Below, piece by piece: positions 1,238 through 61,560 of a DNA stretch of 64,000 nucleotides (its first letter is position 1; each line of letters starts with the position of its first letter). The position numbers were made by a program, and so were the translations under genes. The notes under the pieces were generated by a model, which saw only the letters and a list, made by a program, of their open reading frames with translations, made no database searches and was not told the origin of the DNA. Source of the stretch: Callorhinchus milii (taxonomy: Eukaryota); assembly GCF_018977255.1 (NCBI RefSeq), contig NW_024704755.1, positions 15,500,001 to 15,564,000 on the forward strand, in the 5' to 3' direction.

Positions 1238-1549
1238 CTTTGTTGGATTCAGAAAAAGTGTAGACCGCAATGGCTGGAATCCAGAGGGTGACATGAGATA
1301 CCAGACAGGTATAAACAGCCCCATTCTGTGCAGGCTGTGTCTCTTCCATAGAGCTCGAAGCTTTGTAAAGTTCCTTTGAATTCTTTTCTTCAGTGAAATG
1401 TATCCCAGTTTTAAATTCTTTGCCATCTTTATTCCAGGTGAACGTTACATCTCCCGGGTAGAACTCAGCCGTTTCACACACAAGAGTCAGAGACTTTGAT
1501 GGATCTCTTTCAGAATCTCTGGGGAATATCTTCAGTGGGGTTGGGGGGA
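1238..1549 (-). CDS. Gene Z C1-set exon
   Basis: ctgccctacag acceptor, G|gtaatt donor; C1 motifs; ORF 1170..1481. Confidence 0.9.
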
Positions 1550-4500
1550 CTGTAGGGCAGACAGTGGGGCAGAATCATGTTACTTGTGATCAGTTGGAAT
1601 ATAACATTTGATTCACATTTAAGTTGTATAATAACTGTTTCCCAGGAAATTATAACAAGGAATCTGGATTGTAATGGCAAGAAAGTGCAGTTTTACAAAT
1701 GTGTTTGTGTCTTTTGTTTTGAATGATGTGTTCAGTTTAGGTGATATAATAGCCTTGGAGGTGCTAAAGAAGTGAAGGAATTCATAATCTTAATATTGTG
1801 GCTCTCAGAAATGATGCGGAACCCTTCTCATCACATGGAATATTGTGAAGTTGCGGAATCCAGTCCCACAAGTGGCCTGAGATTCAGAATCAAGTTTCAC
1901 CATCAATAGAGATATAAGCAAAACCTCCCCATTCACACCAACATTAATTTTGTTCTGCTATATTTCTTTAAATTTTATAAGTTTCCAATTTACAAAAGTT
2001 ACAATAGGAACATTGAAGCCGTTTCACGCTGTTTGTGTGACATTGCTGTGTGTAAAATTTTCAAGTTGTCTAAAATGTTAACTTCTGCCTTTCGTATTAA
2101 TAATAATATAATAATAATCCTTGCACTTGATGTACCACTTGATGCTGTTAAGATGTCTGAAATCGCTCCACATAACATATTGTGATGTGGATTCATTATG
2201 TATTTTTCGTCGAAATTCAGAAAAAAATGTGCAAATCAGTCAATTGCAACTGCCTGGACCAGAGGTGCAAGAGATTCTGGTGAATAATAATCCTAATAAT
2301 AATTCTTATATTCGAGGGAGCTTTTCATGCTAAGAGGACCGTCTCAAAGCATTTCACGTGATTCACTATAAAGTGTGGCGATTTCGCATTTTTGTAGAGG
2401 AACACAGCAGCCAGTTTTCCACACAGCAATAATAACAATAATAATAATAATAATCCTTGCATTTGATATAGCGCTTTTCAAATCGGGAGGACGTCACAGA
2501 ACACACTGTAAAGTGAATTGACTGTATATTTGTGGGCGAACGCGGCAGCCAATTGCGGACAGCAATGTCCCACAAACAGTCGTAGATTGAAAATGACCAA
2601 TTTATTATTGTTATTGGTTTTTGGAGGGATTATTATTAGGCTCTGTGTGGAGTAAGGAAACTTGCCCAAGGTTTCTCCCTCTGCCTGGAATTGAACTCAG
2701 GTCTCTCACTTGCAAAGCGATTGCTCTAACCATTGAGCTTCAGGACTCCACAATGTATCACAAATAGTCATGAAGTGAATAACCAAACTTAATTGTGGGA
2801 TTCATAGGCCAGAAAACAGCGAGCAAGATTCTCCCTTTTCTTTTCGATTAGTACCAGGGGATCTTTAATATTTGTAGGATTCTATGATTAATGTGTTACA
2901 AAATATCTCAAATGATATTTGCGATGTTTACGTATGTGAAACATATGGTCAGTCCAATATGATGAGATCTGGTTTGAATCGCTTCGAAGAAGTTCCTTTC
3001 TCAATGAGGAGAAACAAAAGACTGTTTATAAACAACAAACTGTTTTCATTCCTTATCAATCATTTTCTCATGGAAAAATTGTCTGCTGCTGGAGAGAGCT
3101 CTGTTGCATTTGATTTTACAAAGGAACCATCTTGCAAACGACAATAGGTGAAAAATCACCGAATGAACAGTATAAACGGAGATTGATTCGAAAGAGAAGG
3201 AAGAAAATTGAAACTTGTATTCGTGAATGACATTCCAGCTTCTAAAGAAGGAAGATCAAGATTAAGAGTTGAACAACTCTAAACCTACAGAAATACCTGG
3301 ATACTTTTGGGTGATATCGAACTGCAAACTGTACAGCAATACTTGGATACTTTTTGATGCACAAATACTTGGATTAAAATGGACATTAAATTGGGCATTG
3401 CTCCTCTATCTCCCGCAGCATTTGGTTTGGCCAACTTAAATCGTTGTGATCTGCAATGTACGTGGATACATAAGCAAAATTGGATGTATTCTCTTAATTA
3501 GTTATAACCATTACTAATCTGAATTAATAAACATTGATTAATTGTACAACAACAAGATTACATTTGTATAATTTCTACAACATGTGTGTCAGCCCTTTGT
3601 TCAACGCAGAGTAACGAAATTAAAGTAACTCTTACATATCCACCTAAACAAGCAGAAGGGACTTCGGTTTAATGTCTCAACTAAATAGCGGATAGCCACA
3701 GATCAATCCACATGCACTGTATTGAATTGTCAGCGACGTGGGACAACCTCTATCAATTTGTTCAGGAAAGAATAAAATATCAGATAGCGTAAAGTTCGAG
3801 TTACGGCGGTTAAGGCGGTTTGCATAAATGTTTGAAAGCATTGCTTAGCACAATTATTCTGCAATTCAACTTCCCAATTTGTTGTGTTTGATAAATTCGC
3901 CAGCTCAGTAATTTACAACAACAAAGGAGCCAAACTTTGGTTGAATAATATTCTATTGTTCAATGTTTTTCATATTGAAATCAAACCTGTCCTCTGTGCT
4001 GTTCAATCATAAAGTTGTATGAGAGTAGAGAATTAAACAAATAATTTATCCATATCGATTTCACAATGTGGCAATACTCACCTTTCAGCATTCTTCATTA
4101 CTATGGTATTCACACTTACCATGTACAGTTAAACGTGATCCAGTTCCTTTTCCTGCTATTTTCCCCTGACGCATCACTGCACAAAGGTAGACTCCCGAGT
4201 CTTGAAAATTCACGTTTAGGAGGTGGAATGATTTGGACTCAAATGTTTTCCTGTTGTCAGGTTTTGTATTCAGGAATCCACTCTCTCCTTGTTTCCACCA
4301 GTAAAGTTCTGTGTTTGAATTGTGTTGATTTTCGGCAGTCTCACAGGAGAAGGTACCATTTTCACCTTGGATTACTGTGAGTTCTGGAGGATATTGGATC
4401 ACTTTCACTGCTGCATCACCAGCAACTGTCAGGAAATGAATTAACCAATAATTACTGATTATAGAGAGGAATAAAAGCGACAAAACAAACGAAGAGAGGG

Positions 4501-4679
4501 AGAGAAAGGTGGGAGATAGTTAGAGGAAAAGAAAGACAAACGTATTAACAATACACATTTTGAAACTCTTCACCTCTATTGATTTGTATTTAGACTGAGC
4601 TTTACTACAATTGCATACCTGTGGCAATAATCCCCATTAGAGAAAGATAGGGAATAGCATCACTCGCCATCATTGTCAT
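1238..4679 (-). CDS. Gene Z (partial, 3' end lies beyond the window): VJ-C1 IgSF receptor, SIRP-like/NKp30-like
   Basis: Leader 4679-4619 (MTMMASDAIPYLSLMGIIAT), V exon 4425-4120 (306 nt, [26 protein letters not shown]), C1 exon 1549-1238 (312 nt, C..FYP.DVT.TW.KDG..YTCLVSH). All GT-AG, phase 1, open frame. Confidence 0.85.
2430..2752 (-). mobile_element. tRNA(Ala)-derived SINE with L2-type tail
   Basis: tRNA-like head, ..gcgctatatcaaatgcaagga(tta)n tail, apparent caat target-site duplication; the site is empty in the paralogous introns. Confidence 0.8.
4120..4425 (-). CDS. Gene Z V(J) exon
   Basis: ttcctgacag acceptor, G|gtaagt donor; V-set cysteines, C-strand Trp, GTGSRLTV J-like motif; lies within ORF 4085..4483. 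Confidence 0.9.
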
Positions 4680-4766
4680 CAGTTGTTGAGACTCACCCCG
4701 AACCAGTCGTTGGTGTAACAAACATTTGCTGACTGTTTACCATGAAATATCTCGCAGTGTCGTTTG

Positions 4767-7583: not shown

Positions 7584-8236
7584 CATGTAGAATTAAACAT
7601 AATCCAGTTCCATTTTGTGATGTTTTCCCTGATGGGCCACTGCACAGAAATAGACTTCTGAGTCGTGGACATTCACATTTATGAACTGGAACGTTTTCGA
7701 ATCAAATATTTTCCTGTTGTCAGGTTTTGTGTGTAAGAATTTACTCTCTCCTTGTTTCCACCAGTAACGTGTTATCTCTGAACCTCGTTTATTATCAGTA
7801 ACCTTGTAGGTGAATTTAAGGTTTTCATCTTGTAATGCTATCCTTTCTTCAGGATACTGAATCACTTTAATTGTTGCATCACCAGCAAATAAATTAACCT
7901 ATAATTAGTGCTCATAATTCATTACGCCCACAAATATATATGTAGTCACATCATTTTACAGTATGTTCTGTGGAGCAACTTGAGACTTCCTGAAGAAGTG
8001 AAAAGTGCAACATCAAATGCAAGTATTATTATTATTATACAGAGGAAGAAAAAGGAAGAAATAAATAACCAAGCGAGAGAAAGATGGAAGAAAGCGAGAC
8101 CGATCTATTCACTTCACACATTTTGAAACTCTTCTTCTATATTGTATTGTAGTTAAACTATGCTGTTGTAAAATTACATAGCTTTGGCAATAATTCTCTT
8201 TAGAGAAAGATAGGGGACAACATCACTTACTGTTAT
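7584..8236 (-). pseudogene. Orphan leader + divergent V pseudo-module
   Basis: V-like frame [22 protein letters not shown] (ORF 7593..7865). First Cys is Tyr, frameshift before the J-like motif, acceptor deleted, leader ATGs and GT donor mutated, no C1 or TM downstream. Confidence 0.85.
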
Positions 8237-10412: not shown

Positions 10413-10414
10413 AA

Positions 10415-13029: not shown

Positions 13030-14692
13030 TTACTTGGATTTCGTTTCCCTGCAGATAGCTGCTGCTGCTCCTCTGTGGTTTCTCACATGGAGCTCTGCAT
13101 ACTCTGTATCCTTAACAGAACTTTTAGGTTTTCCTGGTTTTTTGGACGGATGTAAATCCACAACAGCATACGTCAGATTGTTCCCGGCTGCCTTTTGTTT
13201 GGTCTGAAAACGCAATATTTGAGAAGTTAATTATATTAATTAGTTTTTCCTCAGTCTTTAGAAATCTCCTCGAATATTTGCCAATTATTATTTGCAGAAC
13301 CGCTTGCCCCATAGATGATTTGATAAGGGATTGCTCCTCACAGAACTGAGCTAAACAAAATCCAGTGGCAACAATTCTATTCCTTATTCGATTAGTTGTG
13401 CATTGACAGCAACCGTGGGGTGGGAAAGAAAAGTGAAAATCATCCAAGAAGCAGTTGTTCAAATGTTCTGGAGAGAATTGTTTTTTATTGTTGAACAGTG
13501 GCAGATTGCTGCCATTTCATAGACAAGGTCAGCGACACAGAGAGAAAAGATCACCACATGATTAACCACAGAGATATACAGACTCGTTTACAATAAACAC
13601 TGAAGTGAGATCCACTGTATAAAATGTAGCAAATGCTCAGATATACCTGGGCGTATACAGTCCTCTCGTCTTGTTTTTTAGGTCTGGGGATTTTCTTGCA
13701 ATGATTCAAATCCACTTTGGCATAAGTCACTGAGTCATTCTGTGCTCCCTGCAGTGTCTGTAAGATAGAAAGTGATAGATTGTTGGCTTCACTTGTCTGG
13801 AGATACCTGTATAAGTATTCACCAAATCACCTCGAGAATAAATGTTTTCTCCTACGTTTGAAATACTTAATATATAGCTTCCAAATATTTTACAGGTGAA
13901 AACCAACCTATGTATTAGTTGTTCATTGACATACATAAATATGGGATGTGAATTTCCATATGTAGGTGATATCCCAGTGCCTCATAGGTTGAGACGCACA
14001 ATACCTCGTCTCACACAAGAAAAGTAACTATTTGGCTATACAGTGGTGGATTGTCGCCATCATATCATAGCTCAGGAGAGAGCCAGAAAGTGAAGATTAG
14101 TGTACAAAGAAAGATTAACCACAAAAATGTAGAAACTATCTTGCAGTAATCACCATGTGAATCCCACTCTTTACCGAAGGAAGACAATTCAATTTGATAG
14201 AAAAGATTTCTGTTTGCAATTTATGTTTCTCAGATATACCTGGGCATACACAGTCCTCTCCTCTTGACTTTTAGGTCTTGGACTTTTCTTAGAACTTTTC
14301 AAATTCAATGTAACATATGCCACCGGCTCGTTCTCTGCTCCATGCTTCGTCTATAAAACAAAATGTGATCATAATAAGAAAAATGCATGACATTTATAAT
14401 GCGCCATTCAAGTCGGGATGACATCCTATGGCACTGATAGATTGTTGTCTTCACTGTTCTGGAAATTGTTGTGTATGTACTGATCTGAAAGCCCTTACGA
14501 ATAAATATTTTCACAGCAGTATATAATTTTTACATATAGATGCAGGTAGGGAACATAATTACATTTCTTAATATTGAACAATATGTTTTCATTTCAATCA
14601 TTCTGTTTTGATTTGAAACATCTGCTCAAATGAATTTAATACATCTACCTGTTCTTCGCAATGACCCGATCTTTTCTGGTTTCTGCGTGAGC
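13030..14692 (-). CDS. Gene A cytoplasmic exons (44, 111, 111 and 174 nt)
   Basis: GSRRNQKRSGHCEEQ / [37 protein letters not shown] / [37 protein letters not shown] / TKQKAAGNNLTYAVVDLHPSKKPGKPKSSVKDTEYAELHVRNHRGAAAAICRETKSK*. Confidence 0.8.
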
Positions 14693-17600
14693 CTGAGAAA
14701 GAATTTCAATAAATGAAGCATTCAGTCAATTTCCAAGTGAATCACATGATTTCAAATTCCTAACCCATTCCCTCCACCACACCCCTTCTCTTATTCCTTC
14801 AAACGTATTGCCATCCACTGCTCTACACATTGGATCTGCCGCCGCTCTCTGGAGCACCGTCACTGAGTAATAATAATTATAATCCTTGCATTTCATATAG
14901 CGCTTTTCACGTCTTCTAGATGTCTCACAGCACTTCACAGAATATACTGTAAGGTGAATTGACTGTATATTTTGTGGTCGAAACGCGGCAGCCGATTGCG
15001 CAGCAGTGTCCCACAAACAGTCATGGATTGAAGTGCCCAACGTATTTTTGTTTTTTTCCTTCAGGGATTATTATCAGGCGTGTGAAGTAAGGAAACTTGC
15101 CCAAGGTTTTACCCTGCCAGGAATCGAACCTATGTCTCTTGTTTGCGAGGCATGTGCTCTAACCACTGAGCTACAGGACTCCAATCGGAGTAACTCCGAT
15201 TCCCTCTTTGCAGTGCTTCCTTCAAATTGTTGATGGAAACACTGAGAGCACACATTAATTGCGATATGGACGTATTGTTTAGATGAAAAAACGTTGGTTA
15301 GACCAATTAGAATCCAGGATTGTTTAACCCATGTCGGAAAGATGTCAAGGATTGAATGGGGTGCAAAAGAGATTTACCAGATCATACCAGGAAGGTTGGT
15401 GTGACCTACGTGCAGAGAGCAGAGCAACAGGGAATTTTCTCATTGGATTACAAAAGTTTGAGTGGTGACTCGATGGAGGTTTGGAAAATTATGATGGGTT
15501 TTGATAGCATCAATGGAGAATTTATTTCCATTGGTAGGTGATTTAGTGACAAGAAAGAAATGGCTAAGATAGCTATAAAATGGGAAACAGTGGGGGGTAA
15601 GGAGATTTCTTTTCCACACACAGAGAATTCAGGATATCCTGTTGAGTGTGATGTTGAGGCAAAATGTGCATTCACTTTCAAAAGGCTTCTTGAAGAAATA
15701 ACCTATATTGGGTTAACTGGAAGGGTAATGTAGAAAAACAGGGAAAGTGGGACTGAAAGCATTGCTCTTGAAAGGTTAGCACAGACACTATGGACGGAAT
15801 GTGACTTTATGCAGAGCATAGTTTTGCACTGCAAATTTATATCATTCTATTGAGGTCAAATTGTGCGTCCACTTTCTAGTTTCAGAGGTCTTTCCTGTAC
15901 CTATAACCCAATTCCACCACCAGGCGGAGTGCAGATCCAAGCAGTGTCAATCATATTGGGGCTTCCACAAGACATGAACAGAGCTATATAAATGTGAATT
16001 TATACTGTACCATTAAATGTTTCCCTATTTCCCTATGTTAAGTATTTCCCTTACTCCTTTGTTTCCCAATTTATAAAAGAATATGAAGATCTTTGAACAT
16101 ATTCCAGGAATATCTTGAAATTCTTATGCAATCAATTTATTGTTGAGAAATCATGTTTTACCATATTGGGAACAGAATCCTAAGGGTTTTACCATCGCAT
16201 TTCTGCTGATACCTGATGCTTCTCTCCAATTAAATACAAAATCTGGATTTTGGTATATCGGGCAAAATTTCTAACTTTGTGGACGATACAAAAGGGCAAC
16301 AGTTTGAAGATGATTTTAATTTCATTGAAGAGATGTAACAACGACAACAACAAGAACAAAATTACATTTGTAAAGCGCCATTGATGTGGGGAGGACGTCC
16401 CAACGCACAGAACAGTCAGGGATCAGGACCCGCGTGTGAGGGGTGGAGTTAGGATGAGGGAGGGAGAAGGGGTAGGAGGGCAGAAGGCTCAAAAGTGTAT
16501 TGAGTCAGGCCTTGAAGGAGGCAAGAGAGGGAGCAAGGAGAAGGTATTGCGGGATGGAGTTCCATAGAGTGGGGATAGCGAGTCTGAAAGCCCGGTCTCC
16601 GATGGTAAGGCAGGTTGGGTGGGAGACCTGGAGTAGACCAGAGCCTGCTGAGTGGAGACAGCGAATAGGCTTATAGGGCGTCAGCAGGTCAGAGATGTAG
16701 GAGTGGGCCATGGAGGGCCTTGATAGTAAGGCAGAGGATTTTGAATTCTATCTTCTGGGGCCAGTCAAGAGTGCGGGTGATGGGGTCACAGAACCTGGTG
16801 CAGGAGAGGACATGAGCTACAGAGTTCTGGATGGTCCACTGCTTGTGAGGGGCTGTTGACAACGAGGAACTAGAAGATTGCAGAGAGAAGACAGAGAGAT
16901 GGCAGAGGAATTAAATGCAGGAAACTGGGCATTTGGGGATGTGTTCTAATGGTCTAACAGGATGCTGCGGTTGAAAATGGCCCAAACAGAATCTGCATTT
17001 TCTAGAATAATATATTTTCTAGAACTAATTAATTGCAACAGAAAGCTGAAAAAAACAGGTGAATTCTTTAAGGAGTGGACAGAGATACAATGTGCTGAAT
17101 GGCCTTCTTTGATGTAAATTTCTGTAGTTCAATCACAACAGATTTCTTTGATTCTTTGAGACGTGAAGCTAAATGTATACAGTGCGAGTTTCTGTGAGGA
17201 CATTTGCAATTGTGAATCAATCGCAACCTATTAATCATTTGCACAGCTTTACAGGAAGTCAAGATTCCTCTGGTTGTGACCCGGGATCCTCTAAACTATG
17301 AAATAAACTTCATTTAAATTAAACATTTACAACTAAACTAAATAGAATCGGAATATATCTTACCTTTCCTTTTGTTTAATTGACATAGTTTCCCAATTAT
17401 GATCAAAAGCAGTAGAAATGCCAGCCCTCCCCCTGCACATCCACCGATCAGTTTGTGAAGGTGTTGAGAACCACTCCCTACAAGAACAACATAAATTGAC
17501 AGCGTTTGTGAACCCAGCAATGAGTTACAGCTTGATTATCTACACAGTGCATCAGATCAGAGATGTTTACGAGCATGTTTTAATTGAAAAAAACCTGAAA

Positions 17601-20600
17601 AGTATCCTGTCAGGTCCGTTGCTCTAATGGTCAAAAATCAGCCAGTGGAATGGCCACTGGTGGTGGCCGGGGTATGGGAAGGTGGGTGGGGTGGTGGGGG
17701 TTGAATTCCTCCAGCGAGACAAAGCTCATCCCATTCCAGATACAAATAAGTTCGAGGTGGACTCCATTATGATCAATCATATTTTAATTTGATATATTAT
17801 CGTGTGGAAATGCCTTAAAAGCACATCACACAATGATTCTATTACAGTGTATTAACTGTTGATATATAGGCAAAGGCGACAGCTAATCTGCGCCATGAAT
17901 TGCTAGTTACAGTAATTGCTAGTTAGGTAATTGCTAGTTAGGTAATTGCAGGTTACCTAATGACCAAAATGTGATAACCAATTTGAAGGGAAGTATACAA
18001 TATTCCATACAATAAGAACAAAGTAGGATATCCTGCAATTTAAAATATACTTATGATTCCCTCAGTTATGATTGAGCAGAGTCTAAACTTGATGAGTTGC
18101 CAAATAGAATATAAAAAAGTAAGAGACTAAAGAGAAAATTCAAAGAACGACATGTGAAGTTGAATATTATTTTACAACTATTTCTATGGAGTATTCTTCA
18201 AGTAAACTACATCATTATAATCTTCTGTGTAAATAAATGGAAATTATCTTCGAATAACAATTTAGTTAACAATTGTTTTCAGCAAATTACCTTTGGATTT
18301 AGCAGCATTGTAGACGGCAACCGCTGGAGTCTGGAGGGTGACGTGAGTTACCAGACAGGTATAAACAACACCGCTCTGCACGGTCTTTGGCTCTTCCAAA
18401 GAGCTCGAAACTTTGTAAAGTCCCTTCGAATTATTTTCTTTCATGAAATGTATCCCAGTTTTAACTTCACTGCCGTCTTTATTCCAGGTGAGCGTGACAT
18501 CTCCCGGGTAAAACTCACCCGTTTCACACACAAGAGTCAGAGACTTTGATGGATGTATTTCAGAATCTGTGGGGAATATCTTCAGTGGGGTTGGGGGGAC
18601 TGTAGGGCAGACAGTGGGGCAGAATCACGTTATTTGCTCTGCCACCATTCTGGAGCAACAACAACCTGCATTTATGTAGCACCTTTGCGCAGATAGTGAC
18701 CTTACATACAGATTTAAATGGAGATTTCACTGTGAATAAGGATATAAGCAAAAGCTCCCCATTCACACCAAAATTCATTTTCTTCCACTATTTTTCTTTA
18801 AGCTGTATAAGTTTCCAACTGATTTACAACAGTTACTATAGCTACTTGTGAGCCGTTCCATTCTGTTTGTGGGACATAGCTGCGAGTAAAACAGATTTAT
18901 GAGAGTAATACTTGCATCTGATTTAACATCTTAGACGTTGTTAACGTGTCTCAAATCGCTGAACATAATACAATGAAATTATGTATTAGTGGAACAAATT
19001 CAGTAAAAAGTATGTAAATCAGAAAATTGTAATTGCCTGGACAGTAGTCGCAAGCGATTCTGATGAATAATCCTAATAATAATTATTATCTTCGAGGGAG
19101 CTTCTCATGCCGTGAGGACAGTCTGAAAGCATTTCACGGGATTCACTGTAAATTAGGGCGATTTGCATTTTCGTAGGTCAACACAACAGCCAGTTTTCCA
19201 CACAGCAATGTACCACAAATAGATATGAAGTGAATAATCAAATTTAACTGATGGATTCATGGGCCAGAACATAGCGAGGAAGAAGGTCTCTTCTGTTTTC
19301 GAGTAGTAGCACAGGATATTTAATAACTGTAGGATTCTGCCATTAATGTGTTAAATAATATCTGAAATTATATTTGTGATGTTTATGTATTTGAAACATA
19401 TAATCAATCCCCTATTAGGGAAGCTGTTTTTGCTTCGAAGAAGATTCTTTCTCAAACAGGAGAAACAAAAGACTTTATAAACAACAAACTCTTTTCATTT
19501 TTTATCAGTCATTTTCTCATGGAAAACATGGTCTGCAGCTGGAGAGATCTCTGTTGCATTTGATTACACAAGGAACCATCTTACAAAAGTCAATAGATGA
19601 AAGGTCATCTGATCAACAGTATAATTGGGGATCGATTCGAAAGAAAATTGGAACTTGGAGTCCGAAACATATTCCATCTTCTAATGAAGGAAGAACAAGA
19701 CGACGAGTTAAACAACTCTAAACATACAATAATACTTGGATACTTTTGGGGTGATATCGAACTGGAAACTGTACAACAATACTTGGATACTTTTTGATGG
19801 ACAAATATTTGGATTGAAATGGTCAATAAATTGAAAATTGCTCCTCTATCTCTCCCGCAGCATTTGGTTGGGTCAACCTATATCTTTATCAGCTGCATTA
19901 TACGAGGAAACATAAGCATAATTGGATGTATTTTTAATTACTTATTAACATTATTAATCTGAATTAATAAAGATTGAATAATTGTACAACATTTGTGTCA
20001 GTCCTTACTGCACCGCAGTATTGAATTTAAAGGAACCCTCACATATCCACCTGAACAACTAGAAGGGACTCGGTTTAACTTCTCATCCAAATAGCGGGAA
20101 GACACATATCGATCCTCAAGCACTGCATTGAATTGTCAGCCGCCGTGGGACAATTTCTGTAACTTTGATCACGATACAAACAAACACCAGATAGAGTAAA
20201 GTTCTAGTTACGGTGATGTGGAGGGATATCAAGGTCTGAAACATTGCTTAACGCAATTATTCAGCAACTCAACTTCCCACTTTGTTGTATTTGATAAATT
20301 GCCGCTTCAGATCATTACAATAGCGAAGGGGCAAAACTTTGGTTGAATAGTATTCTGTTGTTCAATGTTTTTCATATTGATATCAAACCTGTCCTGTGTG
20401 CTGTTCAATCATAAATTTGTATGAGAGTAGAGAATTAGACAAATAATTTACTTATATCGTTTTCACAATATGGCAATACTCACCTTTCAGCATTCTCTGT
20501 TACTATGGTATTCACACTTACCATGTACAGTTAAACGTGATCCAGTTCCTTTTCCTGCTATTTTTTCCTGACGCTTCACTGCACAAAGATAGACTCCCGA

Positions 20601-22251: not shown

Positions 22252-22702
22252 TCATTTTACAGATAAGAACAACTTGGCGATATATATTTCTATAGCGGCC
22301 AGGAATCCACTCTCTCCTTGTTTCCACCAGTAACGTTCTGTGTTTGAATTGTGTTGATTTCTGGCAGTCTTGCAGCGGAATGTAACGTTTTCACCTTGGA
22401 TTACTGTGACTTCTGGAGGATATTGGATCACTTTCACTGATGCATCACCAGCAACTGTCAGGAAATGAATTAACCAATAATTACTGATTATAGAGAGGAA
22501 TAGAAGTGACAAAACAAACGGAGAGAGGGAGAGAAAGGTGGGAGATAGTTAGAGGAAAAGAAAGACGAACGTATTAACTATACACATTTTGAAACTCTTC
22601 ACCTCTATCGTTTTGTATTTAGACTGAGCTTTAGTACAATTCCATACCTGTGGCAATAATCCCCATTAGAGAAAGGTAGGGAATAGCATCACTCGCCATC
22701 AT
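22252..22702 (-). pseudogene. Duplicated leader + 5' half of a V exon
   Basis: Intact leader 22702-22648 and acceptor at 22454. V homology stops at GESGFL (22300) and reads into SINE sequence to a stop at 22252. Confidence 0.85.
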
Positions 22703-46378: not shown

Positions 46379-47026
46379 CATGTAGAATTAAACATGATCC
46401 AGTTCCATTTTGTGATGTTTTCCCTGATGGACCACTGCACAGAAATAGACTCCTGAGTCGTGGACATTCACATTTATGAACTGGAACGTTTTGGAATCAA
46501 ATATTTTCCTGTTCTCAGGTTTTGCGTGTAAGAATTTACTCTCTCCTTTTTTCCACCAGTAAAGCGTTATCTCTGAACCTCGTTTATTATCGTTAATCTT
46601 GCAGGTGAATTTAAGGTTTTTATCTTTTAATGCTATCCATTCTTCAGGATACTGAATCCTTTAATTGTTGCATCACCAGCAAATGAATTAACTTATAATT
46701 AGTGCTCATAATTCATTTCGCCCACAAATATATAGTCAAATCACTTTACAGTATATTCTGTGAAGCAATTTGACACATCCAGAAGAAGTGAAAAGCGCTA
46801 CATTAAATGCAAGTATTATTATTATTATACAGAGGACTAAAAGGGAAGAAATAAATAAGCGAGCGAGAGAAAGATGGAAGAAAGTAAGACCGATCTATTC
46901 ACTTTACACATTTTGAAACTCTTCTTCTATATTGTATTGTAGTTAAACTATGCTATCGTAGAAGTACACAGCTGTGGCAATAATTCTCATTAGAGAAAGA
47001 TACGGGAAAACATCACTTACCGTCAC
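46379..47026 (-). pseudogene. Orphan leader + divergent V pseudo-module (duplicate of 7584-8236)
   Basis: Same divergent V type (KFTCKINDNKRGSE..LYWWK), with frameshifts and both acceptor and donor deleted. Confidence 0.85.
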
Positions 47027-51591: not shown

Positions 51592-54500
51592 TCACGTCAG
51601 ATTGTTCACGGCTACCCTTTGCTTGGTCTGAAAAAGCAATGTTTGAGAAAGTAATTACATTAATTTGTTTTTCCTGACGTTTTAGAAATCTCCTCGAATA
51701 TTTGCAAATTATTATTTACAGCACCACTTGGCTCATTAGGTAAAGGCTCTACTCCTCACAGAACGGAGCTGAACAGAATCCAGGAGCCACAATTCTTTTC
51801 CTTATTGGATTAGTTGTGCATCGACAGCAATGTAGGCTGGAAAAGAAAAGTGAAGACCAGGGTAGCAGTTGTTCAAATGATTTGGAGATTAATGGGTCTT
51901 TTTTTTTGCTAAACAGTGGCGGATTGCTGCCATCATTTCATAGTCCAAGTCAGCGACAGAGAGAGAAAAGATCAGACGAGAAAGAAAGATTAACCACAGA
52001 AATATACAAACTAGTTTATAAACAATGAACAACAACAACAACAACAAGATTCCATTTATAAAGCGCCTTTCACGTCAGGAGGACGTCCCAAGGCGCTGCA
52101 CAGTTGGGTCATGACCCGAGCAGGGGGGAAATGGACAGGGTGAGGGGAGGGAAGGGAGGGAGCGAGGAGGGGGGAAATGGTCAGGATGAGGGGAGGGAAG
52201 GGAGGGAGCGAGGAGCGGGGAAATGGTCAGGGTGAGGGGAGGGAAGGGAGGGAGCGAGGAGGGGGAAGAGAGTCGAGAGGGGAGCTGAAGGCATGAAGTG
52301 AGTTCCACTACATAGAATGTAGGAAAAAAAATTCTCAGATATACCTGGGTATACACAGTGTTTTCGTCTTGTTTTTTAGGTCTTGGAGTTTTCTTGCAAC
52401 GATTCAAATCCATTTTGGCATAAGTCACCGACTCTTTCTCTGCTCCCTGCAGCGTCTGTAAGACAGACAGTGATAGATTGTTGGCTTCACTGATTTGGAG
52501 ATTCCTCTATTAGTACTGATCAAAATGCTCTTGTGAATCAATATTTTATAATAATAATAATAATCCTTGCATTTGATATAGTGCCTTTCACGTCGGGAGG
52601 ACATCCCAAAGCGCTTCACCTGAATTGAAAATATTTAAAATATAACTTCCAAATATTTTACAAGTCAAAATCATCCTAATTAGCTTTCAGAAGAAAAATT
52701 CCTATTTGACTATACAGTGGCTGATTGTCACCATAATATCATAGAATAAGATAGCGCAAGAGTGTGAAGATGAAGGATAAAGAAAAATTAACCAAAAAAA
52801 TGTGCAAACTATCTTACAGTAAATATTGAAGTGAGTCCCATTCTTTAAAGAAGTAAGAACATTCAATTGGATAGGAAAAGTTGCTGTTTCCATTTTGTGT
52901 TTCTCAGATATACCTGGGCATACACAGTCCTCTCCTCTTGTCTTTTAGGTCTTGGAGTTTTCTTGGAACTGGTTAAATTCAATGTAACATAAGCCACCGG
53001 CTCGTTCTCTTTTCCGTGCTTCGTCTATAAAGCAGAATGTGATGACAACAAGAAAAAACATGATATTTATATTGCACCATTCAAGTCGGGATGACGTCCT
53101 ATGGCACTGATGGATTGTTGTCTTCACTGGTCTGAAAATTGTTGGGGAAGTACGAATCAGAAAGCCCTTGAGAATAATTATATTCGGAGCAGTTTATAAT
53201 TTTTAACAAATAGATGCATGTAGGGAACATATTTAAAAGGTTATTATTTCTTAATAACAACAACAACAAGATTACAGTTGTATGGAGCCTTTCATGTCGG
53301 GAGGACTTCCCAAGGCGATGGACAGTGTACAGCAATTCAGACCCGAGCTGGAGTCAGGAGGGGGAAGGGAGGGGAAGAGGGATGGCCGATGGCACGGTCG
53401 AAGAGGAGAGACTTGAGGCGGCACTTGAAGGAGGCTAAGGAGGGAGCGAGACGGAGTGATTGGGGGATGGAATTCCAGAGGTTGGGAGTAGAGTGGCTGA
53501 AGGCTCTCCTGCCAATGGTGGGGCGGGTGGGTCGGAGCACATGGAGCAGGCCAGAGCCGGCTGAGCGGAGGGAGCGGGTAGGTTGGTAGGGGGGTAGGAG
53601 GTTGCAGAAGTCGGGTGACCAATAACTTTCCATTTGAAGAATTCTGTTTTCAGCTGAAGCATCTGCTGAAATTAATTGAATAAATTTACCTGTTCTTCAC
53701 AATGGTTCAATCTGTTCTGGTTTCTGTGTGAGCCTTAGAAAGAAATTCAATAAATTAAGTATTCACTCAATTTCAAAGTAAATCACATGATTTCAACTTC
53801 TTAACACATTTGCCCACCCCCTTCTCTTATTCCTTCAAATGTATTGCCATCCATTGCTCCACACTCTGGAGCTACAGCTGCCTCTGGAACACCATCACTA
53901 AGTAACTCTGATTCCCTTCTTCACCGCCCCCTTTCTTGTTGATGGAAAAAACAAGATAATAGATTCATTGTGATATGGAATATAAAACCAAAGAGGTATT
54001 AGTAAGATGTAAAAAACGTTGGTTGGACCAATTAGATGATTGTGTCCAAGATTGTTTACCCCACGTAGGAAAGATGTCAATGAATGAATGGGGTGCAAAA
54101 GAGATTTAGCACATGATAATAACAACAATAATAATAATAATCCTTGCATTTGATATAGCACTTTTCACGTCTTCGAGATGTCTCAAAGCGTTTCACAGAA
54201 TGGATTGTAAAGTGAATTGACTGTATATTTGTAGGTGAAATGCAGAAGCCAATTGTGCACAGCAGTGTTCCACAAACAGTTGTGGTTTGAAGTGACCAAT
54301 TTATTATTGTTTGATTTTCTTAGGGATTATTATCAGGCGTGTGGAGTAAGGAAACTTGCCCAAGGTTTCACCCTGCTGGGAGTCAAACCCAGGTTTCTCG
54401 TTTGCAAAGCGAGTACTCTAACCGCTGAGCTATATGATACCAGGCAAGGCTGGCGTGACCTATGAGCAGAGACTGGAGCAACAGAGATTTTTCTCCATGG

Positions 54501-57500
54501 AATAAAGAAGTTTGAGTGGTGACCTGATAGAGGTCTTTAAAATTATGAGTGGTTTTGATAGTATCAATGGAGAATTTATTTCCAATGGTAAGTGATTCAG
54601 TGACAAGAAGGCAGTGGTTAAGATAGCTATAAAATGGCAAATAGCGGTTTAAGGAGATTTATTTTCCACACACAGAGAAATCAGGATATCCTGTTGATGG
54701 TGTAGGCAAATTTCGCATTCACTTTCAAAAGGGTACAAGAAGATATAACCTAAAATGGGTTGACTGGAAGAGTAATGGAGAAATACAGGTAAATTGGGAC
54801 TAAAAGCATTGCTCTTAAAAAGATAACACAGACACTGTGGACGGAATGTGACTGTATGCAGATCATACTTCTGTGCTGTAAATTTGTATCCTTCTATCCA
54901 GTTTACAATTTACTTCTTCCTCTTTTGTAGTTTCAGAGGTCTTTCCTGTACCCACAATCCAATTCCATCACCAGATGGGAAGCCGATCCAAGCAGTGTCA
55001 ATCATTTGGGGTTTTCCACAAGACATGAATAGTGCTATATCAATGTGAATTTATATTGTATAGTTAAATGTTTCCCTACTTCTCTATTTTAAATATTTCC
55101 CTTACTCCTTTGTTTCCCTCTATAAAAAACAATATGCAGATCTTTGTCACATTTTCCAGGAATATCTTGAAATTGTCACGCAATCAATGTATTGTTGAGA
55201 AATCATGTTTTACCATATTGGGAACAGAATCCTAATGGTTCTACTGTTGCATTTCTGCTGATACCTGATGCTTTTCTCCAAATATATACAAAATCTGGAT
55301 TTTGTATATCAGGCACTATTTCTAACTTTGCGGATGAGACAAAAGGGCAACAGTGAAGATTATTTTAATTTCATTGGAGAGATATAAGAACAATAACAAC
55401 AACAACAAAATCACATTTCTAAAGTGCCACTCAACAACAACAACAACAACAACAACAACAAGATTCCATTTATAGAGCGCCTTTCACGTCGGGAGGACGT
55501 CCCAAGGCGCTGTAGAGTTGGGTCAGGACCCGAGCAGGGGGAAAATGGTCAGGGTGAGGGGAGGGAATGGAAGGAGCGAGGAGGGGGTAGAGAGTCGAGA
55601 GGGGAGCTGAAGGCACGGTCAAAGAGAAAGGTCTTGAGACTGGCCTTGAAGGAGGAAAGGGAGGAGGCGGCGAAGGCACTGGGGGATAGAGTTCCAGAGC
55701 CTCGGGGCTGAGAGGCTGAAGGCCCAGCCACCGATGGTAGGGCGGTTGGGGCGGGGGATGTGAGGCAGTCCGGAGCCAGAGGAACGGAGGGTACGGGCAG
55801 ATAGGTAGGGGGATAGTAGGTCGGAGAGGTAGGAGGGAGCAAGGCTGTGAATGGCCTTGTAGGTGAGGATGAGGATCTTGAAATCGATCCTCTGGGGGAT
55901 GGGGAGCCAGTGGAGGCGAGCGAGGGTGGGAGTCATGTGGTCGCGGTGTCTGGTGCGGGACAGTACACGAGCTGCAGAGTTCTGAATGACCTGCAGTGTG
56001 GAGGGAGGTGCTGGGAAGGCCGGCGAGGAGAGAGTTCCCATAGTCCAGCCTTGAGGTGATAAAGGCGTAGACCAGAGTTTCAGCCGCGTGAGGGGTGAGG
56101 TAGTGCCGTAGTCTGGCGACATTCCGGAGGTGATGGAAGGCGGTGCCAGTTATGGCGTGGATATGAGGGAGAAAGGACAGCTCAGGGTCGAACAGAACGC
56201 TGAGGTTCCTGACCGGCTTTGAGAGGTGGAGAGTGCGTCCTTGGATGCTGATGTTGTCAGCGCCTGAGGTGCGGAGGCGCTGACGCGAGCCAATCAGGAG
56301 GGCCTTAGTTTTACGCACGTTGAGCTGAAGAAAGTTGTCTCTCGTCCAGGACTCGATGTCGGACAGGCAGGCTGTCAGGACATCGGTGGTCGTGGAGTTG
56401 AGGGTAGAGGAGGAAAGGTAGAGTTGGGTGTCATCCACATACATGTGGAAGTTAACCCCATGTCTGCGGATGATGTCACCAAGGGGGAGCATGTAGAGTG
56501 TGAAGAGGAGAGGATCGAGGACATCGAGAGGATGTCCCAAGGCACCGTGCAGTCAGAGATCAGGACCCAAACCTAAAGGGTAGTGTTGGGATGAGGGAGG
56601 GAGAGGGTGTAGGAGTGCAACTGAATGCACAGTCAAAAGTTTCTTGAGTTGTACCTTGAAGGAGGCAAAAGAGGGAACAAGGCAAAAGGAATGTATGATG
56701 TAGTTCCATAGACAGGGGGCAGAGAGGCTGAAATCCAGCCACCGATGGTATGGCGAGGCGGGCGGGAGACCTGGAGCAGGCCAGAGCCTGCTGAGCGGAG
56801 ATAGCGAACAGGCTTATAGGGGGTCAGCAGGTCAGAGATGTATAAGGGGGCAAGGCCATGGGGGGCCTTGAAAGTAAGACCAAGGATTTTGAATTCTATC
56901 CTCCGGGGGATAGGGAGCCAGTGGAGCCAGTCAAGGTTGCGGCTGATGGGGGCACAGAGCCTGGTGCAGGAGAGGACATGAGCTGCAGAGTTCTGGATGA
57001 TCTGCTGTTTGTGAGGGGAGGCTGACAAGGAGGAACTAGAAGATTGTACAGAGAGAGAGAGATAATAATAATAATAATAATCCTTGCATTTGATATAGCG
57101 CTTTTCAGGTCGGGAGGACGTCCCAAAGCGCTTCACAGAACACACTGTAAAGTGAATTGACTGTATATTTGTGGGCGAACGCGGCAGCCAATTGCGCACA
57201 GCAATGTCCCACAAACAGTCGTGGATTGAAAATGACCAATTTTATTATTGTTTTGTTTTTTTGGAGGGATTATTATTAGGCATGTGGAGTAAGGAAACTT
57301 GCCCAAGGTCTCGCCCTGCCTGGAATTCAAATCAGGTCTCTCGCTTGCAAAACGAGTGCTCAAACCACTGAGCTGCAGGACTCCAGATGACAGAGGAAAT
57401 TAAATGCAGAAAATTGGGCACTTGGGGATGTGTAACCAGGTGAGTAGTCTGACAGGATGCTGCGGGTGAAAACGGCTCAGACAGATTCTGTCTTTTCTAA

Positions 57501-60500
57501 AATAGCATATTTTCTAAAATTAATTAATTGTAGCAGAAAGATTAAAAAAAAAGGTGAATTGGGCGTGAATTCTTTAAGGATCGAACAGAGATACAATGGG
57601 CTGAATGGCCTTCTATGATGTAAATTTATTAGTTCAATCACAACAGGTTTCTGACATTCGTTCACACATGAAGCTAAATGTATACAGTGTGAGTTTCTGT
57701 GAGGACATTTGCAATTGTAAATCAATCGCAACCTATTAATCATTTGCACAGCTTTACAGGATGTCAAGATTCCTCTCATTGTGACCTGGGATCCTCTAAA
57801 CTATAAAATAAAGTTCATTTAAATTAAACATTTACAATTAAACTAAATAAAATAGGAATATATCTTACCTTTCCTTTTGTTTAATTGGCATCGTTTCCCA
57901 ATTACAATCAAAAGCAGCAGAAATGCCAGCCCTCCCCCTGCACATCCACCAATCAGGAAATTACGATGTTGAGAACCACTCCCTACAAGAACAGCATAAA
58001 TTGAGTGTGTTAATGACCCCAGCAATGCGTTACAGCCTCATTATCTACACAGTGCATCAGATCAAAGAAGTTCACGCAGATTTGTTTTTAAAAAATACTG
58101 TAAAAAGTGTCCTGGAAGGTCCGTTGCACTAATGGTCAAAAATCAGCCAGTGGAGTTCGTCAGCAAGATTTAGAGTAGCAGACCAGTCACTGGTGGTGGG
58201 GGGGTTGGGGGTCAGGGAGGTTTGCATTACTCCAGCAGTACAACAAACCATACTCTGGATTTTCTTATCCATGTTTCTAGTCAACCTGCATCAAATGCTC
58301 TTCAGATTACATAACGTGAGTCCCTCCAGGAAGACAAAGCTCATCCCATTCCAGATACAAATAAATTCGAGTTGGACGCCCTTATGATCAATCATATTTT
58401 CATTTGACATATTACCGTATGGAAACGGTTCAAAAGCAAATCACACAATAACTTTATTATACTGAAGTAAATGTTGATATATAGGCAAAGCTAATTGCTA
58501 GTTAGTGGAATTACCAAATGATGAAAACGTAATGCACAACTTGAAGGGAAGTATATAGTATTCCATATAATAAAAACAGTTGTACATAACACAATTTAAA
58601 GATATACATTTGATGCCCTCAGTTCTGATTCAGCAGAGTCTAAGAAGATGAAGAATATTCCACAAGAAAACTATATCATTGTAATTTTATGTGTAAATCA
58701 ATGTAAATTATCTTCGAATAACAATTTAGTTAACAACAATTGTCTTTCATAAATTACCTTTGGATTTAGCAGTGTTGTAGACGGCAACCGCTGGAGTCTG
58801 GAGGCTGACGTGAAATGCCAGACAGGTATAAATAACTCCGCTCTGCACAGGCTTTGGCTCTTCCATAGAGCTCGAAACTTTGTAAAGTCCATTTGAGTTA
58901 TTTTTTTTCATGAAATTTATCCCAGTTTTAACTTCATTGCCATCTTTATTCCAGATGAATGTTACATCTCCCGGGTAAACCTCAGCCGTTTCACACACAA
59001 GAGTCAGAGACTTTGATGGATCTCTTTCAGAAGCTCTGGGGAATATCTTCAGTGGGGTTGGGGGGACTGTAGGGCAGACAGTGGGGCAGAATCACATTAT
59101 TTGCTCTGCCACCATTCTGGAACAACAACAACCTGCATTTATGTAACGCCTTTGCGCATATAGTGACCTTACCTACAGATTTAAATGGAGATTTCACTGT
59201 GAATAGGGATATAAGCAAAACCTCCCCATTCACACCAACATTAATTTTGTTCCACTGTGTTTTTTAAATTGTATTTGTTTTGAAACTAATTTACAACAGT
59301 TACAATAGGTACTTTGAAACTGCGCACTGAAACTGTTTCATGCTGTTTGTCGAACATTACTGTGCGTAAAATAGGTTTTCTAGAATGTTAACTTCTGCCT
59401 TTTGTATTAATAATCATGATAATAATAATCCTTGCATTTGATGTAGCAACTTAGATGTTGTTAAGGTGTCTCCCATCGCTACACATAATACACTGTAATC
59501 TGTGGAACAAATTCAGAAAAATTATATAAATCAGAAAATTGTAGTTGCCTGGACTGTAGGTGCAAGAGATTCTGATGAATAATAATCCTAATAATAATTC
59601 CTATCTTAGAGGGAGCGTTTCATGCCATGAGGACCGTCTGAAAGCATTTCACGGGATTCACTGTAAATTAGGGCGATTTGCATTTTTGTAGGTTAACACA
59701 ACAGTCAGTTTTCCACACAGCAATGTACCGCAAATAGATATGAAGTGAATAATCAAATTTAACTGATGGATTCATGGGCCAGAACATAGCGAAGAACAAT
59801 GTCTCTTCTCCTTTCGAATAGTATCACGGGATCTTTAATATCTGTAGGATTCTGCAATTAATGTGTTAAATAATATCTGAAATGATATATGTGCTGCTTA
59901 TGTATTTGCAACATATGATCAATCGCATATTAGGGAAGCTGCTTTTGCTTCGAAGAAGATTCTTTCTCAATGAGGAGAAACAAAAACTTTATAAACAACA
60001 AACTGTTTTCATTTCTTATGTCATTTTCACATTAAAAAAATGGTCTAAGCTGGAGAGAGTTCTGTTGCATCTTACAACAGTCAATAGATGAAAGGTCATC
60101 TAATCAACAGTATAAAAATAGATCGATTCGAAAGAGAACAAAGAAAATTGGAACTTGGAGTCGGAAACATATTCCAGCTTCTAATGAAGGAAGAACAAGA
60201 CGACGAGTTAAACATCTCAACGTGCAATAATACTTGGATACTTTTGGGGTTATATCGAACTGGAAACCATGCAACAATATTTGGATACTTTTTGATGGAC
60301 AAATATTCCGATTAAAATGATCATTAGATTGGACATTACTCCTTTATCTCTCGCACAGCATTTGGTTTTGTCAACTGATATCTTTATGAGCTGCATTATA
60401 CGAGGATGCATAAGCATGATGGGATGTAATCTTTTATTTACTTATTAACATTATTAATCTGAATTAATAGAGATTGATTAATTGTATGACATTTGAGTTA

Positions 60501-61560
60501 GTCCTTACTGCACCACAGGGCAACAAATTTAAAGGAACCCTCACATATTCACCTGAACAAGTAGAAGGGACCTCGGTTTAACGTCTCATCCAAATAGCGG
60601 GAATAGAAGATCGATCCTCAAGCATTGCATTGAATTGTCAGGGATGTGGGACAATCTCTATAATTTTGTTCAGGATAGAATCAAATATCAGATCGAGTAA
60701 AGTTCGAGTTACGGCGGTACGGAGGTATATTTAAAAACATTGCTTAACGCAATTATTCAGCAACTCAGCTTCCCACTTTGTTATGTTTAATAAATTCGCC
60801 GGCTCAGGTCAGTTCAATAAAGAAGGGGCAAAACTTTGGTTTCATAATATTCTATTGGTCAATAAGTATTGAAATAAAACCTGTCCTGTGTGCTGTTCAA
60901 TCATAACTTTGTATGAGTGTTGAGAATTAAACAAATAATTTATTCATATCGATTTCACAATGTGGCAATACTCACCTTTCAGCATTCTTCATTACTATGG
61001 TATTCACACTTACCATGTACAGTTAAACATGATCCAGTTCCTTTTCCTGCTATTTTTTCCTGACGCATCACTGCACAAAGATAGACTCCCGAGTCTTGAA
61101 AATTCACGTTTAGGAGGTGGAATGATTTGGACTCAAATGTTTTCCTGTTGTCAGGTTTTGTATTCAGGAATCCACTCTCTCCTTGTTTCCACCAGTAAAG
61201 TTCTGTATTTGAATTGTGTTGATTTTCGGCAGTCTCACAGGAGAATGTACCATTTTCACCTTGGATTACTGTGAGTTCTGCAGGATATTGGATCACTTTC
61301 ACTGCTGCATCACCAGCAACTGTCAGGAAATGAATTAACCAATAATTACTGATTATAGAGAGGAATAAAAGCGACAAAACAAACAGAGAGAGGGAGGAGA
61401 AAACAATCAGAAGATAAGAAAGACGGACGTATTCACTATACACATTTTGAAAAATTTTATCTACCTCGTTTTGTATTTAGACTGAGCTTTAGTACAATTC
61501 CATACCTGTGGTGATAATCCCTATTAGATAAATATAGGAGATCACATCACTCGCCATCAT
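51592..61560 (-). CDS. Gene D: complete VJ-C1-TM receptor with a four-tyrosine tail, 361 aa
   Basis: Exons 61560-61506, 61319-61014, 59066-58758, 57982-57869, 53733-53690, 53024-52914, 52455-52345, 51627-51592 (TGA) sum to 1086 nt, open. Confidence 0.84.
52028..52292 (-). mobile_element. Young 5'-truncated L2 element
   Basis: Apparent atgaa TSD; the site is empty at the paralogous positions near 13610 and 36660. Confidence 0.85.
53262..53620 (-). mobile_element. L2 3' fragment
   Basis: [23 protein letters not shown] motifs with (AAC)n tail. Confidence 0.75.
54115..54440 (-). mobile_element. tRNA(Ala)-derived SINE inserted into an old CR1 fragment
   Basis: Same family; interrupts sequence that is contiguous at about 15.3 kb. 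Confidence 0.75.
55433..56520 (-). mobile_element. Young L2 element, about 1.1 kb (RT C-terminal half + 3'UTR), nested in an older L2 tail
   Basis: [34 protein letters not shown]2-type RT motif (ORF 55470..56540) and (AAC)n tail. Confidence 0.9.
57062..57385 (-). mobile_element. tRNA(Ala)-derived SINE
   Basis: Same family, full length. Confidence 0.8.
57869..57982 (-). CDS. Gene D stalk/transmembrane exon
   Basis: 114 nt; [29 protein letters not shown]; ORF 57843..58025. Confidence 0.85.
58758..59066 (-). CDS. Gene D C1-set exon
   Basis: 309 nt; ORF 58747..58998; same lineage as the A C1 exon. Confidence 0.9.
61014..61319 (-). CDS. Gene D V(J) exon
   Basis: 306 nt; ORF 60979..61443. Confidence 0.9.

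Follow-up and report, generated by a model that had tools for sequence, protein, structure and literature searches.

The stretch of DNA analysed here (the window) comprises 64,000 nucleotides of Callorhinchus milii scaffold MU249845.1 (GCA_018977255.1, 18.1 Mb; positions 15,500,001-15,564,000), and it carries part of what is probably a multigene family of NKp30-related inhibitory receptors, arranged in a tandem cluster and found across Chondrichthyes. These are type I membrane receptors that combine a variable-joining (VJ) domain with a C1-set domain. The most fitting description is that of NKp30-related VJ-C1 receptors, rather than of SIRP orthologues or of the nearest kin of immunoglobulin (Ig) and T-cell receptor (TCR) genes, because the V domain is probably of the NKp30 type and the C1 domain is of the kind found in major histocompatibility complex (MHC) molecules, B7H6 and SIRP. 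All receptor exons lie on the minus strand of the window. Three genes, designated G2, G4 and G5, are complete, and an uncharged transmembrane segment and a tyrosine-bearing tail are found in these only. The remaining copies are G1, with V and C1 exons but no transmembrane or tail exon, the V-only G3, and several V, C1 and other exon relics. A sequence-only reading of the window had counted at least four genes with V, C1, transmembrane and tail exons; the architecture stands, whereas the count does not. The span assigned by that reading, 1238-61560, fits the end of the G1 C1 exon at one side and the G5 start codon at the other.

The complete genes encode a signal peptide, two Ig domains, a stalk, a transmembrane segment and a cytoplasmic tail in which paired tyrosines recur at a fixed spacing. 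The exon plan shared by G2, G4 and G5 consists of eight or seven exons: a split leader of 52-55 nt ending in phase 1, a VJ exon of 306 nt, a C1 exon of 309-312 nt, a stalk and transmembrane exon of 114 nt, a 44-nt exon, then phase-0 tail exons of 111 nt each and finally a last exon. In the spliced models, every intron is GT-AG. Spliced G5 matches, residue for residue, the RefSeq protein P0001 (C. milii), which is named "signal-regulatory protein beta-1-like" and is encoded at MU249845.1 15,551,592-15,561,557 on the minus strand. The fullest model is G2, with three tail modules that each pair an immunoreceptor tyrosine-based inhibitory motif (ITIM) with a second tyrosine. The exons of the three genes are as follows.

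13030..21075 (-): G2, complete, 407 amino acids, six tail tyrosines in three ITIM plus TxYxx[T/L] modules
21021-21075 (-): G2 leader exon
20522..20827 (-): G2 V exon, its J-like G strand already joined in the germline, Pfam V-set and Ig_3
18291..18599 (-): G2 C1-set exon (…FYPGDVTLTW…YTCLVTH…), Pfam C1-set
17364..17477 (-): G2 stalk and uncharged transmembrane exon
14649-14692, 14240-14350, 13647-13757 and 13030-13203 (-): G2 cytoplasmic exons
13030..14350 (-): G2 tail modules (ITIM-x23-TxYxx[T/L]), one in each of the two 111-nt phase-0 exons and one in the last exon
36716..43580 (-): G4, 347 amino acids, three tail tyrosines
43526-43580 (-): G4 leader exon
43027-43332 (-): G4 VJ exon
41890-42201 (-): G4 C1 exon
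41168-41281 (-): G4 transmembrane exon
38420-38463, 37966-38076 and 36716-36823 (-): G4 cytoplasmic exons
51592..61557 (-): G5, complete, 360 amino acids, four tail tyrosines, translation identical to P0001
61506-61557 (-): G5 leader exon
61014-61319 (-): G5 VJ exon
58758-59066 (-): G5 C1 exon
57869-57982 (-): G5 transmembrane exon
53690-53733, 52914-53024, 52345-52455 and 51592-51627 (-): G5 cytoplasmic exons

The first domain is classified by Pfam as V-set/Ig (V-set 6e-8). The V and J portions share one exon, behind a split leader, and the G2 V exon is identical to that of the UniProt entry A0A4W3H6B2 (P0003). In a six-frame scan, the J-like motif G-x-G-T-G-S-x-L-x-V was found at the end of five intact V exons, all on the minus strand, as the claim of a germline-joined J motif had implied.

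4124-4153, 20526-20555 and 43031-43060 (-): GKGTGSRLTV motif
61018-61047 (-): J-like motif of G5
30918-30947 (-): GNGTGSHLIV motif (G3)

Recombination signal sequences (RSS) were sought as CAC-anchored heptamers with at most one mismatch, a 12/23±1 spacer and a nonamer with at most two mismatches. The whole window yielded one weak heptamer/nonamer match, located in an intron on the opposite strand, vs 0.93 expected from shuffles, which is chance level. The earlier statement that no V exon is flanked by an RSS thus holds, and without RSS the genes do not rearrange. A per-column entropy scan of the V domain for loops resembling complementarity-determining regions gave no sharp pattern.

The second domain is a true C1-set domain, as had been proposed (Pfam C1-set, E=3.2e-14, 53.5 bits vs a cut-off of 21). 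C1-set exons number four in the window (1238-1549, 18291-18599, 41890-42201 and 58758-59066). In G2, G4 and G5 the domain is followed by a stalk of 10 residues, an uncharged transmembrane segment and a tail with six (G2), four (G5) or three (G4) tyrosines, in agreement with the range of three to six given beforehand. The tyrosine motifs of G2 are VAYVTL, TVYAQT, VTYAKV, TVYAQT, LTYAVV and TEYAEL. Each module opens with a canonical ITIM of the form [VL]xYxx[VL] (VAYVTL, VTYAKV or VIYAKV, LTYAVV), followed exactly 23 residues on by TxYxx[T/L]. Modules are 14 residues apart, in phase 0, and one to three of them make up a tail. Under the broader definition [SIVL]xYxx[IVL], canonical ITIMs number three in G2 (VAYVTL, VTYAKV and LTYAVV), two in G4, and one in G5, which also has the near-canonical VTYAKM. 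The ITIMs of the tail are conserved in the alignment of the wider family. The sequence-only reading had placed the tyrosines in contexts resembling both ITIMs and immunoreceptor tyrosine-based switch motifs (ITSMs). The first part is borne out, while the ITSM contexts are weaker than had been proposed: TVYAQT is not a canonical ITSM, because its +3 residue is T after splicing, and the apparent "TVYAQV" was partly a read-through into the GT of the splice donor.

Members of the family extend well beyond the window. On the same scaffold and in the same orientation, family genes are found at 15.257-15.277, 15.347-15.365, 15.4825-15.4892, 15.596-15.599 and >=15.609 Mb, with more family exons in the outermost flanks. 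The cluster therefore runs from 15.257 Mb to beyond 15.609 Mb, covering more than 350 kb and containing more than a dozen genes, and the earlier proposal of a multigene family from a cartilaginous fish was correct. Every C. milii locus examined along the cluster shows family genes only, and no non-Ig neighbours were retrieved. Relatives in other species were sought by word-indexed protein searches and by an exhaustive HMMER search of 1.84 billion representatives (50%-identity clusters). The HMMER search returned 212 representative proteins at E<=1e-30, a count that includes unrelated giant multi-Ig proteins. Every named match with the full architecture is chondrichthyan, from chimaera, sharks and rays, and the genera include Callorhinchus, Heptranchias, Heterodontus, Mustelus, Scyliorhinus, Carcharodon, Hypanus, Mobula, Hemitrygon, Amblyraja, Leucoraja and Narcine. 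As for members in bony vertebrates, the word-indexed profile search returned only Robo proteins from beyond Chondrichthyes. Residues that are invariant in the family alignment comprise two cysteine pairs, the C-strand tryptophan, DxGxYxC, GxG…L.V and FYP…W…YxC.V.H.

Within this shared framework, several variant forms occur. Short-tailed shark and ray members (P0018, P0019 and P0022), a form present in catshark, Mustelus and stingray, have an arginine in the outer part of the transmembrane segment (W-I-S-R-C, W-A-I-R-C and W-I-L-R-C; general pattern W-x-I/L-R-C…), at a position occupied by leucine or glycine in the ITIM-tailed forms. This form was seen in elasmobranch relatives only, and its pattern is that of activating partners, which suggests a paired-receptor system. 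Other members (P0030, P0110 and P0140) have basic tails that are poor in tyrosine or free of it, and are named NCR3LG1-like. Elsewhere in the family there are isoforms or genes that lack the C1 domain (P0026, P0101, P0148 and P0168), and such forms are called NCR3-like by RefSeq. In models of 489-493 amino acids, domains belonging to the family itself are duplicated, as V-C1-V-C1 or V-C1-C1. The automatic names in RefSeq and UniProt are inconsistent, and include SIRPB1-like, PTPNS1-like, Ig lambda-like, tapasin-related-like, CD276 homolog, NCR3-like and NCR3LG1-like.

The relationships of the V domain were examined with a family hidden Markov model (HMM), scored against a small reference panel in which the two sequences verified against the PDB, human NKp30 and B7H6, are 100% identical to the 3PV6 chains. 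NKp30 scored best (31.6 bits), followed by SIRPalpha d1 (23.9) and V-kappa (22.9); the B7H6 V domain reached 11.8. An alignment of the family V profile with a mammalian NKp30 profile (hhalign) gave a probability of 96.6% (E=6e-10). In maximum-likelihood trees (LG+C20, posterior mean site frequency model), in which NKp30 was represented by five mammalian sequences, the family V domains are monophyletic (95/93), and adjoin first four V domains that all belong to one multi-VJ protein of a turtle with an ITIM tail, and then the five mammalian NKp30 sequences (89/75). A clade of family, NKp30 and turtle domains was not rejected by the approximately unbiased test (p=0.16). Non-mammalian NKp30 sequences were also sought, and the word-indexed search with human NKp30 returned mammalian NCR3 only. 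A ranking of NKp30, SIRP and Ig by PDB sequence searches was dropped, the best 60 matches being flooded by multi-domain proteins and antibodies.

The turtle protein in question, P0145 (Malaclemys terrapin), and cluster members in other turtles carry a tandem array of four V domains of the VJ type (…GNGTGTQVTI), together with an ITIM/ITSM tail. Outside cartilaginous fish, these V domains are the most similar to those of the family (35-46 bits, above human NKp30). The proteins are annotated as FCRL5-, pIgR- or titin-like.

The C1 domain has a different set of relatives. With the family C1 HMM, the highest-scoring references in the panel were the C domain of B7H6 (51.1 bits), the Ig lambda constant domain (48.6) and SIRPalpha d3 (43.6). 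In the C1 tree, the family forms one clade (100/99) within a loose group (92/78) that also holds MHC class I alpha3, class II alpha2 and beta2, beta2-microglobulin, SIRP d2 and d3, B7H6 and multi-C1 proteins. The nearest outgroups of the family clade are multi-C1 proteins of skate, coelacanth and lungfish, which have B7H6-like V and C1 domains.

One alternative is that these genes are the SIRP orthologues of cartilaginous fish, V-C1 receptors with SHP-binding tails that would bind a CD47-like ligand, in line with most of their RefSeq names (SIRPB1-like or PTPNS1-like). The last tail module, NNLTYAVVDL…DTEYAEL, resembles the ITYADL…TEYASI pairs of SIRPalpha; among the C1 references, SIRPalpha d3 ranks third, and a skink SIRP-like protein (P0160) is among the distant matches. 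However, paired ITIM/ITSM tails recur among many unrelated receptors, and each family gene has a single C1 domain where SIRP has two. NKp30 scores above SIRPalpha d1 with the V HMM, and in the V trees the human and skink SIRP domains group with Ig/TCR V domains, apart from the family (93/71 and 89/75). With dozens of paralogues per species, there is also no one-to-one relation. Orthology with SIRP is accordingly considered very unlikely.

A second alternative, also given little credence, is that the genes are direct relics of an antigen-receptor precursor that predates RAG, and are closer to Ig/TCR than to any other gene of the immunoglobulin superfamily. The VJ plus C1 architecture, the split leader and the J-like GxG bulge motif are all in keeping with it. 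An AlphaFold2 model of G5, built on the family alignment, is confident for V and C1 (predicted local distance difference test values mostly 72-96 by block) and for a transmembrane helix at residues 226-259, with a disordered tail, and when it was used as a Foldseek query the top 50 PDB matches, at 19-27% identity, were without exception antibody light chains. For the G2 C1 domain, a phmmer search of PDB sequences gave an Ig lambda constant domain as the best match per domain, and some antibody VL domains reach about 45 bits against the V profile. The trees point elsewhere: the V domain falls with NKp30 and the turtle VJ domains, and the C1 domain falls with MHC, B7H6 and SIRP, apart from the Ig kappa, lambda and heavy constants, the TCR constants and P0100. 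The last of these is a Heptranchias V plus multi-C1 protein that resembles UrIg2 and sits with the Ig/TCR-type constants. In the literature, moreover, the position of nearest non-rearranging relative is already filled by UrIg and UrIg2 (PMC12227049). Since both domains are placed outside Ig/TCR, the likeness to a precursor is one of architecture and not of closest kinship; the resemblance put forward by the sequence-only reading is retained for architecture and fold and given up for descent.

It is also conceivable, though at a still lower level of likelihood, that the proteins are B7H6-like ligands and not receptors, i.e. V-C1 surface molecules seen by NKp30-type receptors, with tails that merely modulate the cell bearing them. 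Human B7H6 is the top C1 reference, the members with basic, tyrosine-poor tails carry the NCR3LG1-like name, and one of the V trees has the V domain of B7H6 as the sister of NKp30 plus the family. That domain nevertheless scores poorly against the family V profile and lies outside the family group, and the B7H6 C domain does not join the family directly in the C1 tree. The window genes, in addition, carry multiple canonical ITIMs, a hallmark of signalling receptors.

The description as NKp30-related inhibitory receptors is itself open to several objections. The affinity of the V domain to NKp30 is only moderately supported, because the CD4 d1 reference falls inside the group, and the antibody VL domains noted above score higher against the family V profile than human NKp30 does. 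The C1 profile scores B7H6 and Ig lambda almost equally. Half of the tail tyrosines are found in TxYxxT, which is not a canonical ITSM, and both "inhibitory" and "leukocyte" are putative labels drawn from motifs alone. Among the window genes, only for G5 does a public protein model agree exactly; the G4 frame is cut short by a stop, and G1 is without a transmembrane segment and tail.

In G4, an in-frame TAG in the third cytoplasmic exon replaces the fourth tyrosine codon, leaving a tail with three tyrosines. The former last cytoplasmic exon, detected by tblastn with P0004, has tyrosine to cysteine changes and a frameshift, and the shortening of the G4 tail is thus attributed to decay. The G5 tail stops early as well (…NNLT*), ahead of a decayed last exon at 51465-51587. 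For G1, no transmembrane or tail exon was found in the window or in the 10 kb searched of the next ~10.8 kb of scaffold, 782 bases of which were unseen; the 10 kb searched downstream (locus L005) contain a last-exon relic with stops only. The product of G1 may be a secreted V-C1 protein. The RefSeq model of a neighbouring gene (P0005) is a V-C1 product of 229 amino acids that reads through the C1 splice donor.

1238..4673 (-): G1, with leader (4619-4673), VJ (4120-4425) and C1 (1238-1549) exons
415..551 (-): frameshifted C1-like relic at the expected place of the G1 transmembrane exon (tblastn)
7596..7955 (-): V pseudo-exon, frameshift just before the J motif
22300..22702 (-): partial duplicate, leader exon and 5' half of a V exon
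30914..31219 (-): G3 V exon (GNGTGSHLIV), intact open reading frame without C1 or transmembrane exons, pseudogene or fragment
28228..28416 (-): G3 last-exon relic, with a stop
36095..36281 (-): decayed last cytoplasmic exon of G4, with tyrosine to cysteine changes and a frameshift
46391..46660 (-): V pseudo-exon, frame shift before the J motif, J part (…NGTGSCLILHG) in another frame

It is highly improbable that the window copies are mostly decaying duplicates without present function, as might be read from the state of G1, G3 and G4, from the V/C1 relics and insertions of long interspersed nuclear elements (LINEs), and from ratios of nonsynonymous to synonymous substitution (dN/dS) above 1 in some V pairs, on very few changes; the G2 and G5 frames are fully open and correctly spliced over eight exons, G5 equals a RefSeq model, and Ig-fold residues and tail motifs are conserved across the ancient divergence of chimaera and ray.

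The evolution of the cluster is one of birth and death. Self-alignment of the window reveals paralogous blocks of 80-95% nucleotide identity, including a segmental duplication of ~39 kb (offset 38.8-38.95 kb, 93-95% identity). The pseudo-exons at 7596-7955 and 46391-46660 are copies of one another within it, and both lose frame after …HQGK, which suggests that the frameshift predates the duplication. Among G1, G2, G4 and G5, the V exons hardly differ, with pairwise synonymous divergence (dS) of 0-0.06, while the C1 exons of the same genes are far more diverged (dS 0.12-0.20). Gene conversion or another homogenisation acting on the V exon may explain this contrast, as may a mosaic duplication.

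Several repeated elements accompany the genes. Fragments of non-LTR retrotransposons are found in introns and between genes, including two RVT_1 matches (Pfam) at 55473-56552 (-) and 9660-10052 (+), and a LINE endonuclease-reverse transcriptase domain (Pfam) lies downstream of the G3 V exon at 28858-29325 (-). Other long open reading frames, e.g. 40131-40850 and 26321-27067, gave no match in a Pfam search. The two tRNA-Ala genes called by ARAGORN (CGC and TGC; 15109-15180 (-) and 54368-54439 (-)) are probably heads of tRNA-derived short interspersed elements, because they lie inside a repeated element (translation …SCSSVVRA…GSIPGR…) that recurs across the window. A tandem repeat of 45-46 nt in 2-3 copies (GGGAAATGGTCAGGGTGAGGGGAGGGAAGGGAGG…) occurs on both strands, at 11069-11205, 23282-23384 and 52117-52265, one copy being situated just downstream of the third tail exon of G5. 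GA-rich simple repeats are present at 6426-6557 and 63556-63687, and a single N stands at position 28752, downstream of the V exon of G3 in DNA that is either intronic or intergenic.

If the NKp30-related genes act as inhibitory receptors, a mechanism can be proposed by analogy with PD-1, Siglecs, PECAM-1, SIRPalpha and LAIR-1. The V domain would bind a cell-surface or pathogen ligand, bringing the tail to Src-family kinases, and these would phosphorylate the paired tyrosines. The doubly phosphorylated ITIM-x23-Tyr pairs could then dock the tandem SH2 domains of SHP-1 or SHP-2, which would dephosphorylate activation signals and so damp activation. The modular phase-0 exons might allow the number of tyrosine pairs to vary from one to three through duplication, loss or skipping, and the short-tailed relatives with a transmembrane arginine would be the activating counterparts.

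A broader evolutionary scenario can be put forward only tentatively, and is rather unlikely to hold. The architecture of the family may be that of the ancestor shared by NKp30 and B7H6, which would have been a non-rearranging VJ-C1 receptor of the proto-MHC era with ITIM-pair signalling and activating partners. Tetrapod NKp30 would then be the result of a loss of the C1 exon, and the chondrichthyan paired system may recognise linked "NCR3LG1-like" V-C1 molecules. A position beside AIF1 in MHC class III is the mark of NCR3. In the white shark, five genes that bear the label NCR3 (LOC121291731, LOC121291652, LOC121291149, LOC121291708 and LOC121291923) adjoin AIF1 in the MHC class III region (Verissimo et al. 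2023 supplement, PMC10751288). A placement of white shark P0052 (CM029971.1 as chr19) and catshark P0019 and P0086 (LR744038.1 as chr13) on MHC chromosomes by accession arithmetic was withdrawn, as the published tables list shox2/rsrc1 and non-matching rows there.

Accounts of how antibodies and T-cell receptors arose invoke non-rearranging VJ-C1 genes as the raw material, and NKp30 is often cited as a natural killer cell receptor conserved from sharks to humans. If real and expressed, the present family would imply that the NKp30 lineage once had two domains, and that cartilaginous fish own an inhibitory, probably paired, system comparable to KIR, LILR, SIRP and NITR; it would also provide concrete genes with which co-evolution of receptor and ligand, the latter being B7H6-like molecules, can be tested. 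It would further correct the misleading automatic names SIRP, tapasin-related, Ig lambda and CD276. The sequence-only reading could match the genes to no named family, and no description of a chondrichthyan VJ-C1-ITIM family was found in the searchable literature, but automatic RefSeq and UniProt models already exist. The nearest subjects in that literature are UrIg and UrIg2, and NKp30/B7H6 co-evolution "from sharks to mammals", which Flajnik et al. 2012 reportedly describe. The main uncertainty as to novelty is that the 2012 work and Ohta & Flajnik 2015 may already mention NKp30-like genes of the elephant shark.

The family can be placed among known systems by the features that it shares with each. 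Ig and TCR have the two-domain V plus C1 fold that is predicted here by AlphaFold2 and Foldseek, but their V and J segments are separate and flanked by RSS. UrIg and UrIg2, also from cartilaginous fish, resemble the family in the germline-joined VJ exon, the split leader and the C1-type domains (PMC12227049). They differ in having many C domains and no ITIM tail, where the family has a single C1 domain, and UrIg2 is reported in elasmobranchs, whereas the family occurs in chimaera too. SIRPalpha and the other SIRPs share a VJ-like V domain followed by a C1-set domain, a paired-tyrosine tail, which in SIRP recruits SHP-1/2, and the coexistence of inhibitory and activating members, both putative in the family. 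Their ectodomain, however, is V-C1-C1, and the family V domain is separate from theirs in the trees. B7H6 (NCR3LG1) has a V plus C1 ectodomain and the top-scoring C1 reference, but its V domain is distant from that of the family, and it is no ITIM receptor but a ligand, carried by cells under stress.

NKp30 (NCR3), the best V-profile reference and the nearest named group in the V trees, is like the family in that its V domain is of the VJ type, does not rearrange and has a G strand of the form GxGTG/GNGT…L.V, and is like the short-tailed shark and ray members in the arginine of its outer transmembrane segment. It differs from the window genes in that it has no C domain, is activating (through the transmembrane arginine, by which it is coupled to an adaptor) and is single-copy in mammals; the window genes, by contrast, have a C1 exon, an uncharged transmembrane segment and ITIM tails, and are multicopy. 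The functionally closest analogue is provided by the NITRs of bony fish, known from that group only. These also form large, fast-evolving, non-rearranging clusters of genes, in which the V domains are of the VJ type and the receptors have an ITIM tail or else a charged transmembrane segment, and they are set apart from the present family in that their second domain is of the V/I type and not of the C1 set.

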